64,000 nt of DNA from Lepidodermella squamata (taxonomy: Eukaryota; Animalia; Gastrotricha). Under the pieces are notes generated by a model. The model did not search any database. It was given only the letters and a program-made list of their open reading frames with translations, and was not told the origin of the DNA. This document shows, piece by piece, positions 39,464 to 43,765 of this stretch. The translations under genes were made by a program, and so were the position numbers. Location of the stretch: the NCBI GenBank assembly GCA_047495785.1, contig JBLDXI010000009.1:4960001-5024000 (forward strand), read 5' to 3'. Numbering within the stretch: position 1 is the first letter of the stretch; every line of letters begins with the position of its first letter.

Positions 39464-40147
39464 TTCAAATGGAGTTTTAAAATGTTTCGTGAAATAATAA
39501 AATAAAATGGAATGAATGAGGCAACGTCGAGCGAGCGAAGTCATACCGGACTGCGTTGCCAGAAATTGCAGCTGCCGCTTGAATATATCGCCACGTAGAA
39601 ATTTTCCAGCTACAACTTTGCAGTAGTGTTGAGAGAATCATATGATCTAACGCCTTCAAAACAACTAAGCAGCTTGGTTGTTTGCAAAGTTTCTTGCCGC
39701 TTCTCGTCTCAGTACATTTGGCGTTATGACGAATTATTGAAAATGTCGTAAATGATTCCGGCAAAAACGAGGGAACTTTTCAGAAAATATTGGGTGAACA
39801 GAACAGCTTCAAAAATCACATTATGCATCTAAATCGAAGGGAGATTGAACAGCAGAAAAATTAGCAATATTCCGAAAAGCAGCGTTTTTAATTTTTAATT
39901 TTTCCGAACAGAAATGTCGTTGGGAAACTGAAATGCTGCAAGCAGTTAGCTGTGGGGCCGTGCAAACTGCTAGATGTCTTCCATCCAGGCCGATCAGAAC
40001 TCAAAAGGTTAGTAGCTGGACGCAGAATCAATAATAACGGCCCACCAACAACATAAAAGCGCATCGGTTATACTAAAGCCTTTTCTTACAAAAGTAAAAT
40101 GAAACTTTAGGTTATAGTAAAGATGTTTCGATTTCTTTGTATGTATA

Positions 40148-40645
40148 AATAAGGCCCTAGGGAAGGCTAGTTTCGAGGAAAAACTCACATAATAAGGCGA
40201 GGCGAAGCCGAGTCTTATTATGTGAGTTTTTCCGAGGAACTAGCCGTACCGTGGGCCTTATTAGACATATTACTCAAGGCGAAGCGTTCACCGTTCCTGA
40301 TAAAACTGCAATTTAAATGGAAAAATGTGACATAATAGGTGATTTTCTGGTGTGAAATGCGACTTTAAAAAATCAACCTTAAAACTGTACGATGAAAACG
40401 GCATTTTTGAACGAATTTCATGCTGAAACAAGAAAAGTGATCTCGCTTCGCTCGAAGAGTTTCAAGTGCTTTTTCTCGCTTCGCTCGATGAAATCAGCGT
40501 CCCCTCGCTTTGCTCGGGCGAAAACCTTGCCCCGTGATGCTCGCTGCGCTCGCGTTTCACGGCGGGGCAAGGTTTTCGCACCTTCGGTGCTCACTGTAAA
40601 AATTAAAAAATCCCCCTTAAATAAGCGGTTTCTTATTATGTTATT
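40148..40645. mobile_element. Non-autonomous element with a 115-bp terminal palindrome and TCGCTTCGCTCG repeats (family unassigned)
   Basis: 40148-40262 is an imperfect palindrome centred on GGCGAAGCC. Tandem CTCGCTTCGCTCG motifs and a second hairpin (GCGAAAACCTTGCCCCG / CGGGGCAAGGTTTTCGC) at ~40518-40580. Confidence 0.6.
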
Positions 40646-41261
40646 CTAAAAAGGTTGCTCCTCACTGATTAAATTCCTAACTCAGTCGGTTGATAGAGAT
40701 ATAATGAAGCTTTCCCAAAGCTCAAGCGCCAAAAACCGACAAATAGATCAACTTCTGTGGAAAAAAGGAATCCGAAATGTCAAGCTAGGTGAACCACATA
40801 CTAGAACTGGGGAATTAATCTGTTACCGACTCGGGTGTTCATTTCCTCACTAGAACTGGGGAACCGGAAGTGAGACTGCTAGTGTTGACAACCTTTTAAG
40901 AAAATAAGTTTGAGTATTATTTGAAATGTCCAGCCATTAATGCCGAAAAATGATAATAAGTAGAGAATAAATTGAAAATACCGCGATTATCGGTCATCGA
41001 TGTATCGTTTTGGGAAATTATTATTTTGGGAATTATAAATTTGCTTAAAAAGTGGATTTTTAGAGCAATTTCTCTTTAGGGTAACCCAATTGCCAATTGG
41101 GGCGGATTGCTCATAACGGTACGACATATAGCAACAGTCAATATAGTAATAGTTTTTTTTTAAAGTTCATCATTATGAAATATTGCTGATCGTAAAATAT
41201 AAATTCAGTAAAATCAAGGACGTAAAACAGGAAACAGTAATTTCTCTTAACGAGTGCGTTC

Positions 41262-41411
41262 TTTCTCTGTGAGAAAGTGAGAGACCCGGGGACAACTGAG
41301 CGCATAGCTAAGGAAGCCCGACAACATAAGGCTCGCGCTAGACAACCGGCTGACAACGAGAGCCTCTACGGACCGCTCACGCCCCGGAACGAACACTTTC
41401 TCAGAGAGAAA
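41262..41411 (-). ncRNA. Candidate structured RNA of unknown family (nested stems, 4x GUUGUC)
   Basis: 18-bp closing stem with one mismatch; nested CCGGGG/CCCCGG, TGAGCG/CGCTCA and GGCTC/GAGCC. Strand inferred from G-U pairs. Confidence 0.45.
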
Positions 41412-41658
41412 TTTGTCTTTTTTCATTTCTGCTATTCGTTCACATATTGCAATTCAAGTCCAAGAATAATATGACTCGTAGCATGATGGCGCATTCGTCA
41501 TATTTCAATTAGGTACAAATTTTAACAATTAGCATTGAGTTATAACTAAGGTTACAGATATATAAACATGGCTCTAAAGGATCTCTACGAGATAAGCTCG
41601 AATCAAATCAAGCGGCGCTATGACAGTCGTTTTATTTTCACGCGGGAACCCTAATATA

Positions 41659-41838
41659 CAGTGTGGCCAAAAAAGCCGCAAAAGGCGAATTTGATGCGCA
41701 TCAATTTCATGGGGGATTTTAAGAAATTGAAGAATTTCAAGCATTCTTTTCACGATGGAACTCCTCAATAATTTCGTGAAACTCAAAATCAAAATTATGC
41801 GCATCAATTTCGGCTTCTGCGGCTTTTTGGCCACCCTG
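41659..41838. mobile_element. Tc1/mariner-type MITE (180 bp)
   Basis: ~45-bp imperfect TIRs CAGTGTGGCCAAAAA... / ...TTTTTGGCCACCCTG with TA on both sides. Confidence 0.85.
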
Positions 41839-43765
41839 TAGACGTTAGCATGATCGCGCTAACAATAGAATGTCTTAACACCGTCGGAATTAAATCAGGG
41901 CTTGACAATATGCGAACTGAACGATCAATAGTGGGTCGTGTTGCCTGCACCTTGTGCATAAGATGTCTAACAACCGTCGGAATATTCAAAACCGTGCCCG
42001 CGCATCAATCTTCGCATGAAATCAACATGATATTTACAACCTTAACAGCGCAAAAAATGTTTTCGATAGCAATAAATTTAGACCCGCCAAGCGATTTCGG
42101 CCCTATGTCTATCCGCAGCCATTCGAAAATAGGGTGTTGCTACTACTTCATTGATATAAAGCGTCACTTGCAACTTGCAACACGTGCCATCTATCATAGC
42201 CGTCATCGGAAGATAAGGCAGCATCAACTTTCTCAAATTCCGAAAAAACGCCTCACTGCTCACCCGTTTTCATCGCAACTTCAAAGTAAAATGGGGCTCG
42301 TTCTCTATTAGACACTATTTCCGTTTCACACATAGAAACATTGCTAGAAAGGCAAATTGTATGCACTTCTCCTAGATCCTAGAATACTCAGCCCTCGTGA
42401 GTGAAGTGATATTTAGCTGATGGTTTTTTCTATTGTTGCACGGGAAATGGTCTAAAGAGGCATCACAATTTCCAGATTTTTGGCTCCTCGTCTACGACGT
42501 CAGATTCTACGCGTATTACTGCCATTAGAATGGAGATGTCTTCCGATGAAATGTATCAAAATAAGTCATTCCGATGGAATAATTTACTTTTCTAGCAGTT
42601 TTTGTATTTCCTGCGATTTAAGTCAAAATGGTACGAGAAAAGAAAATAAAGGTTCGATAATATAAGCCGAGTCCTTTTTACATATTATGGGTTGGCAGGA
42701 AAAGGTGCCTTTTTGAAGGCAACTTTTCCAATAAGCAGTCGACTCACTAGGCGACTTGCATGATTTCTGGCAATTCTTCTCCGAAACAATAAAGTAGTTT
42801 TTTTATTTCATATCACCGATTTATTGGACAGAATGTTTTCTATAAGCGACCACAACATATCATCGCAGCAATGTGATTGTTGAAGACATCGTTTTTGTTG
42901 CCGGTTACGCAGTTCCACGAACAAATTCTTGAATAAATATAAGAATGACAATAATAATAATAAAAGGTAGTAATATAATGACAATAACAAAAAAATGACC
43001 ATTCGTCACCGAAATAATGTGCCGAAATTTTTTCCAAGAATGTATAAGCAAAATAGGAATAACAACCACATCGAGCGAGAGAGAAAAAAGCTGCAGGTTG
43101 AATTTTCTTCCATTCTTTTAAGAATTTTGAGAAGACAGAAAACGGTGCAATTTTAGGGATACTTGAAAGGAGAGATGGACTACATTCACAACATCAAGAC
43201 AATGAAATTTTGCAATGGATTCACGGCCCATTCAAACAAGCACCCGAGACAAGTTACTTCTACTAGACAGAACACGAAATGATTACAAAAAAATGGAAGA
43301 GAAAAACTATAATAGCCACTTTTTCGGAAATTTTCAAAACTTTCATTTCCCTCAGCAGAAATTGGTCGAAAATGATGTATTTTCAAGGCGGTAACGAGTA
43401 CATAGTTAGTTCAAGGTCAAAATTATTGTCAGGAAAATTCACTGAATCAATTTCTTAATATTACAAATATTGCGGTTGGTAATAATTGATGATTAATTAT
43501 GAAAAGAAATTGAACATCAGCAGAAAATAAGACACCGAATTTATATATGACGAGAAAATCTTCACAAAAAAACGTCAAAATAGCCACTTTCAAAACCAAT
43601 GGAACAAATTTGAAATTTAATGAAATTCAATTTTTTTCAAAAAATTTCAATTTGAATTTCAATGGCCTAATTTTGACTTTTTCATTCAACAGAAAATTGA
43701 CGTTAACCAGTAAATAAAAAGTGTGAATTTTTCAATCGATTTTCGATCAAGTTCAGTTTCGCCGA

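Follow-up and report, generated by a model that had tools for sequence, protein, structure and literature searches.

The window, that is the whole stretch of DNA that was analysed, comprises 64,000 nucleotides of the gastrotrich Lepidodermella squamata (positions 4,960,001 to 5,024,000 of the forward strand of contig JBLDXI010000009.1, from assembly GCA_047495785.1, 121 Mb in 151 contigs). At positions 41262-41411 of this window, two closing arms, 41262-41279 and 41394-41411, are complementary at 17 of 18 positions and enclose a segment with a GC content of 0.55, compared with 0.32 and 0.37 in the 300-nt flanks. The original prediction had described a GC-rich island in AT-rich intergenic DNA; the GC contrast was confirmed, but the surroundings consist of transposon debris. 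RNA folding of the segment gave a minimum free energy (MFE) of -58.6 kcal/mol for the plus strand (z -3.8) and of -66.9 kcal/mol for the minus strand (z -4.1), and none of the 200 shuffled sequences folded as well, so that the rod-like structure of about 150 nt proposed at these positions is real. We found that this rod is not a free-standing RNA gene but a structured RNA domain, situated midway along the 3' UTR in a family of LINEs (non-LTR retrotransposons). The sense strand of the LINE is the minus strand of the window. The features of the locus are listed below in the sense direction, with the evidence for each of them; R1 denotes a covariance model for which nine rods were used, and other copies are designated by C or L numbers.

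41574..41627, minus strand: remnant of the ORF2 C-terminus, last 17 codons with the TAG stop (41576-41574); from translation and DNA homology
41412..41573, minus strand: AT-rich 3' UTR from the stop codon to the rod; from alignment with the C33 and C50 copies
41262..41411, minus strand: rod-like RNA domain of the LINE 3' UTR, window copy, subfamily 1; from folding, an R1 score of 131.5 bits and the alignment of copies
41131..41261, minus strand: portion of the 3' UTR that follows the rod in sense orientation; from alignment with the C33, C29 and C15a copies
40148..41130, no strand assigned: younger insertion of about 980 bp that splits the LINE 3' UTR; from C33, which is continuous across this point
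40106..40147, minus strand: LINE 3' UTR resumes; homology ends at 40106

The LINE copy of the window is a dead relic, truncated at its 5' end, deprived of its 3' end and interrupted by repeats. The minus-strand translation of 41627-41574 ends with ...TVIAPLDLIRAYLVEIL, where the intact LINE ORF ends with ...KAPLDVIRDFIVDIV, and the 5' truncation was placed at about 41627, the point at which the DNA homology to the C50 copy stops. On the other side, the LINE homology ends at 40106, and this copy thus has neither the 3'-terminal module nor a poly(A) tail. The rod itself lacks 11 nt of the 5' arm which are present in every other full-length rod. The insertion at 40148-41130 consists of two repeats, one at about 40148-40645 and the other at 40646-41130, whose families are unrelated and each found in at least 15 copies elsewhere with up to 99% identity. 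The first of these repeats, of about 500 bp, opens with a 56-nt foldback whose arms are 40148-40203 and 40207-40262, and occurs in at least 16 near-full copies at 91-99% identity; the second, inserted back to back with it, has at least 15 copies at 83-94% identity. Another repeat family begins exactly at the truncation point of the LINE: the segment 41627-41700 matches at least 10 loci, and 41657-41840 forms an imperfect palindrome of about 184 nt with sub-threshold Rfam matches of plant-miRNA type (E 0.11). The repeat at 41627-41840 looks like a foldback or MITE-type element.

The family that carries the rod was characterised from the other copies in the assembly. BLAST with the rod retrieved 11 places at 79-90% identity, and R1 recovered at least 12 rods in three subfamilies (10 good rods, the divergent C26 and the fragment C24b), a number that is a lower bound since only part of the candidates was scored. 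C26, with 73.6 bits, represents the third subfamily. All the readable flanks of the rods are LINE 3' UTR, and in all three subfamilies this UTR joins the end of a LINE ORF. The copies form two groups, each with its flanks conserved; one of them comprises C24, C17, C36, C2, C15 and C54, which are 96-98% identical over about 529 bp. The left end of this unit, on the plus strand as oriented in the window, is a run of T9 to T14 joined to unrelated DNA, which reads on the other strand as a poly(A) tail of A9 to A14. A perfect target-site duplication of 8 bp, AAATCTTT, borders the C24 copy, for which five uninterrupted copies of the host repeat provide the empty sites, and the C54 copy is bordered by a duplication of 11 bp. 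The partial copies C4, C15b and C24 retain the poly(A) end only, which is the pattern of 5' truncation, while C36, C17 and C2 extend past the 529 bp for 2-3 kb at 98.5-99.85% identity. The repeat that hosts the C24 copy is itself a high-copy sequence, present in at least 25 places at 83-93% identity (L005 1120-1206 and 1720-1800; L027, L030, L031, L034 and L037).

Upstream of the rod, on the poly(A)-ended strand, the subfamily-2 copies exhibit an ORF of 769 amino acids with a reverse transcriptase domain (RVT_1, 7.5e-32), of which the nearest solved structures are human LINE-1 ORF2p (1e-14) and R2 proteins. Two sister copies, L071 and L073, match the start of this ORF at 97-99% identity and contain in addition an apurinic-type endonuclease domain N-terminal to the reverse transcriptase (Exo_endo_phos_2, 1.4e-12, and Exo_endo_phos), and the end of an upstream ORF (ORF1) is visible in sister copies of this ORF. 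The element is therefore an APE-type LINE that ends in poly(A) and has an ORF1 and an ORF2, the latter with both endonuclease and reverse transcriptase. In a large protein search, the relatives at 38-46% identity were all unnamed, and the one relative with a name was the reverse transcriptase of an insect 'X-element' at 29%; the clade is possibly Jockey-like. In an intact copy, the 3' UTR is composed of 254 nt of AT-rich sequence, the GC-rich rod of 158 nt, 209 nt of AT-rich sequence and a terminal module of 84 nt followed by poly(A), which places the rod about 290 nt before the tail. The copies L065/L068 (C36) and L010/L070 (C17) are 99.85% identical over 2 kb and have an open frame of 769-818 amino acids. 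The sequences suggest that subfamily 2 was active very recently, although all the copies examined are truncated or devoid of part of the endonuclease region.

With the original prediction in mind, for which a high-copy transposon flanked by target-site duplications would have spoken against an RNA element, we note that the carrier is indeed a transposon with such duplications, but a low-copy LINE and not a MITE. Searches for the rod outside this family were negative within their scope: R1 found no rod in the other LINE families of this genome, no short high-copy carrier of the rod that could be a SINE partner was found in the assembly (where counts are lower bounds), and a metagenome scan with a conserved core of 20 nt gave three chance matches, none of them with a rod. 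In one subfamily-3 copy, L024 (G000:C54, about 2274728-2275500), the rod is cleanly deleted except for its first 15 nt or so, in an element that otherwise retains the end of the ORF, the UTR, the terminal module and poly(A). This copy, the only one of its kind seen, is either a natural rod-less variant or the product of a deletion after insertion.

The fold is conserved among the three subfamilies. The domain measures about 158-172 nt and forms 56 base pairs in a single unbranched helix with small bulges and internal loops. Folded alone, the intact rods chosen for the three subfamilies, C36 (-90.3 kcal/mol, z -7.4), C33 (-75.4 kcal/mol, z -4.9) and C26 (-96.1 kcal/mol, z -7.9), each gave the same unbranched rod. 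In an alignment of 10 distinct sequences, which was fitted to the model and therefore leans towards the structure, and which represents three independent lineages, standard pairs occupied 93.9% of the cells, compared with 31-48% when the partners were slid by 1-3 columns, and 15 of the 56 pairs were changed on both sides, compared with 4.6 ± 1.5 in shuffles and 1-7 after sliding. Compensatory changes, whose absence would have told against a functional RNA, are thus present in these 15 pairs, the comparison being one of copies within a single genome. Relative to the subfamily-2 reference, the rod of the other subfamilies shows 64-80% identity and their terminal module 87-92%, compared with 44-64% for the remaining UTR, which is largely unalignable. 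The rod and the 84-nt terminal module are thereby two islands of sequence kept among three otherwise diverged subfamilies. The tip of the rod is variable, with 11 nt deleted in C15a and an expansion in C26, so that the conserved part corresponds to the lower and middle stem.

The same alignment was examined for the strand on which the pairing is maintained. We counted 69 G-U cells, which pair in the sense RNA only, and 9 A-C cells, which would pair in the antisense RNA only, four of these nine being located in the degraded fragment. When the count is restricted to pairs that are Watson-Crick in their most frequent form, the departures amount to 25 G-U versus 4 A-C. The folding energies go in the same direction, the sense and antisense MFE being -75 versus -58 in subfamily 1 and -96 versus -77 in subfamily 3. 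Since the decay of a neutral palindrome would be symmetric with respect to the strands, the large excess of G-U over A-C points to a selection that acts on the sense-strand RNA of the LINE, the minus strand of the window. The earlier proposals that the structure is formed by RNA rather than by a DNA hairpin, and that the minus strand is the relevant one, both agree with these results.

The motif GACAAC starts on the plus strand of the window at 41291, 41320, 41341 and 41352, and the presence of any hexamer four times or more in a shuffled rod has a probability of 0.003. Comparison of the copies gave a different status to each of the four sites, which read GUUGUC in the sense RNA:

41291..41296, minus strand: GUUGUC, invariant in all three subfamilies; from copy comparison, the nearest to the rod base
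41320..41325, minus strand: GUUGUC in subfamily 1 only, UUUGUC in subfamily 2, lost in subfamily 3; from copy comparison
41341..41346, minus strand: GUUGUC in the window copy only, GUUGGC or GUGGGC in all others; a mutation specific to the window
41352..41357, minus strand: GUUGUC in subfamilies 1 and 2, GUUUUC in subfamily 3; from copy comparison

At the invariant site, the GU lies in an internal loop, the following UG is paired, the next U is bulged and the C is paired. Two GUUGUC sites, both of the 3' arm, have an identical bulge and loop context. The repetition of this module on the 3' arm is compatible with a protein-binding module, although it is not kept family-wide. All four motifs first noticed do exist in the window, but their number is not conserved and varies from one to three by subfamily; by comparison of the copies, the fourfold motif of the window rod appears to be partly an accident of this relic.

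Several explanations were considered for the maintenance of the rod. The one that we favour, and which in our analysis is somewhat probable, is that the rod would be a cis-acting docking platform carried by the LINE transcript for a protein on which the element depends. The partner would most probably be the element's own ORF2p or ORF1p. By docking on the rod, the protein would ensure that the RNA which encodes it is also the RNA which is packaged and reverse-transcribed, and the terminal module would position this template at the nicked target. Given the variability of the tip, the part recognised would be the stem in its lower and middle portions, together with the U-bulge and the GU-loop. 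Several observations weigh against such a docking platform. About 290 nt separate the rod from the poly(A), whereas the stem-loops by which LINEs are known to be recognised are short and placed at the 3' end, and the terminal module alone could suffice; the lineages are few (three subfamilies and about 12 copies); and L024 exists without a rod, which would make the rod dispensable if it was deleted before insertion.

Two known systems come near to a docking rod of this kind. The R2 elements are site-specific, have a restriction-like endonuclease and possess a multi-helix 3' UTR. The LINE studied here resembles them by a large structured domain in the 3' UTR, and differs from them by its APE endonuclease, its poly(A), its dispersed insertions and its single unbranched helix, with no similarity in sequence. 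In Bombyx mori R2, the 3' UTR is bound by the element's protein, and what determines this binding is partly distinct from what positions the template (PMC11194090), a split to which the layout of rod and terminal module is parallel. The second system is that of the stringent LINEs, such as ZfL2-1 and ZfL2-2 of zebrafish and UnaL2 of eel, in which stem-loops of the 3' tail are strictly recognised by the linker region of ORF2 (PMC4176376). The known LINE 3' stem-loops are short, of about 8-10 bp, and conserved 3' stem-loops have been proposed for L1 and Alu (PMC5135761). [quoted passage not shown] Those stem-loops occupy the 3' terminus itself and frequently recur in a partner SINE, whereas the rod has 56 bp, precedes the poly(A) by about 290 nt, is accompanied by a separate terminal module and had no SINE partner among the carriers searched in the assembly.

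A smaller but appreciable chance is given to the recruitment of a host factor, in which the rod would act on the nuclear export, the localisation or the stability of a retroelement mRNA that has no introns, in the manner of the retroviral constitutive transport element (CTE) or of the interaction of L1 with NXF1. The position and the conservation of the rod fit this role as well as they fit the docking of a LINE protein, and the two GUUGUC sites of the 3' arm with their common bulge and loop context speak for it. The CTE has two loops on opposite arms. The rod is comparable to the CTE and to the NXF1 element of L1 as an RNA of the 3' region of a retroelement with two similar bulge/loop modules (in subfamily 1), a likeness of shape and position only; it differs from the CTE by the lack of a sequence match and by having both modules on one arm. 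Export elements are documented in the 3' regions of retroelements: the CTE is located 3' and binds NXF1 (PMC4829213), and for human L1 an NXF1-binding element has been reported where the 3' UTR begins (Lindtner et al. 2002, cited in PMC3045867). Against a host factor, the rod has no sequence similarity to any known element and the repeated module is kept in one or two subfamilies only; a host partner and an element-encoded partner are indistinguishable on the present evidence.

We regard as doubtful, and as slightly less likely again, the broader proposal that the rod represents an undescribed class of LINE cis-RNA. Such a class would consist of a long helix in the middle of the UTR, of which the U-bulge and GU-loop modules would dock host export or localisation proteins or the ORF proteins, separately from the module that primes reverse transcription, and the recognition of the template would then be bipartite. 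Poly(A)-tailed LINEs are usually thought to depend mainly on their tail.

It is improbable that the rod is a hairpin diced into small RNAs (of endo-siRNA or miRNA-like type), or a neutral palindrome inherited by descent with no benefit to the element. Dicer could plausibly cleave a near-perfect hairpin of 56 bp, and the small number of copies share a common descent; but a hairpin that is neutral or harmful would be expected to decay, and the pairing survives the 15 double changes with 69 G-U against 9 A-C, the rod is better conserved than the UTR around it and no miRNA family was matched. Very improbable is an independent ncRNA gene on the plus strand, for example a Pol III gene ending at a T-run, with multivalent protein sites. 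Conserved flanks, and the T-run that every copy has after the rod when read on the plus strand, are what such a gene would show, but these flanks are LINE 3' UTR running into the ORF and the poly(A), the pairing favours the minus strand, and neither an Rfam family nor a tRNA-like promoter was found. This T-run is the complement of an A-run of the LINE UTR, and neither it nor the conserved flanks represent a terminator or a promoter. A MITE or DNA transposon with the arms of the rod as terminal inverted repeats is hardly credible, for although the rod is an inverted repeat, multi-copy and near target-site duplications, these duplications flank a poly(A)-ended unit of 0.5-3 kb and not the rod, the copies are truncated at one end only and they number about 12. 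The original prediction had left the choice between an ncRNA and a protein-binding cis-element; the cis-element is the best reading, and the free-standing ncRNA gene is abandoned, its flanks being LINE 3' UTR.

More specific identities were also rejected. A Pol III gene family of snRNA type, with a promoter and a T-run, does not agree with flanks that are LINE UTR. A SINE of about 520 bp with the rod near its 5' end was discarded since the copies extend into a 3-kb element bearing an ORF, and a hAT-like MITE, considered for its 8-bp duplication, since the unit has no terminal inverted repeats and ends in poly(A). Hammerhead, HDV-like and twister ribozymes gave no match, and the unbranched rod is unfit for them. 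The rod had been said to belong to no recognised RNA family, which was borne out by Rfam: a search of the whole window at gathering scores returned nothing on the rod, a search of both strands at E <= 10 returned nothing on the window rod, and only chance partial overlaps (E about 8) on the intact L005 copy. ARAGORN detected no tRNA-like gene at five loci. Across the window, the Rfam gathering score was reached only by a tRNA gene of 56 bits at 23797-23878 on the minus strand.

With the docking of a LINE protein as the favoured role, a candidate for a new ncRNA gene is explained away as transposon sequence, and what takes its place is an RNA structure supported by covariation in the 3' UTR of a LINE that was apparently active recently, in a poorly studied invertebrate. 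The two separable conserved islands of the UTR, together with the rod-less copy, would constitute a usable test of how the proteins of a poly(A)-tailed LINE choose their own RNA, a matter of interest to specialists rather than a broad surprise.

In the same genome, a different and abundant LINE family (L076-L079, on G000:C39, C58, C79 and C69) also carries a GC-rich segment in its 3' UTR, but it is another family, with 26-31% protein identity, its sequence differs and it has no R1 match. This family has an intact ORF of 933 amino acids and nearly identical copies, many of them on small contigs, and its 3' UTR is long and GC-rich, with a segment of about 70 nt repeated twice.
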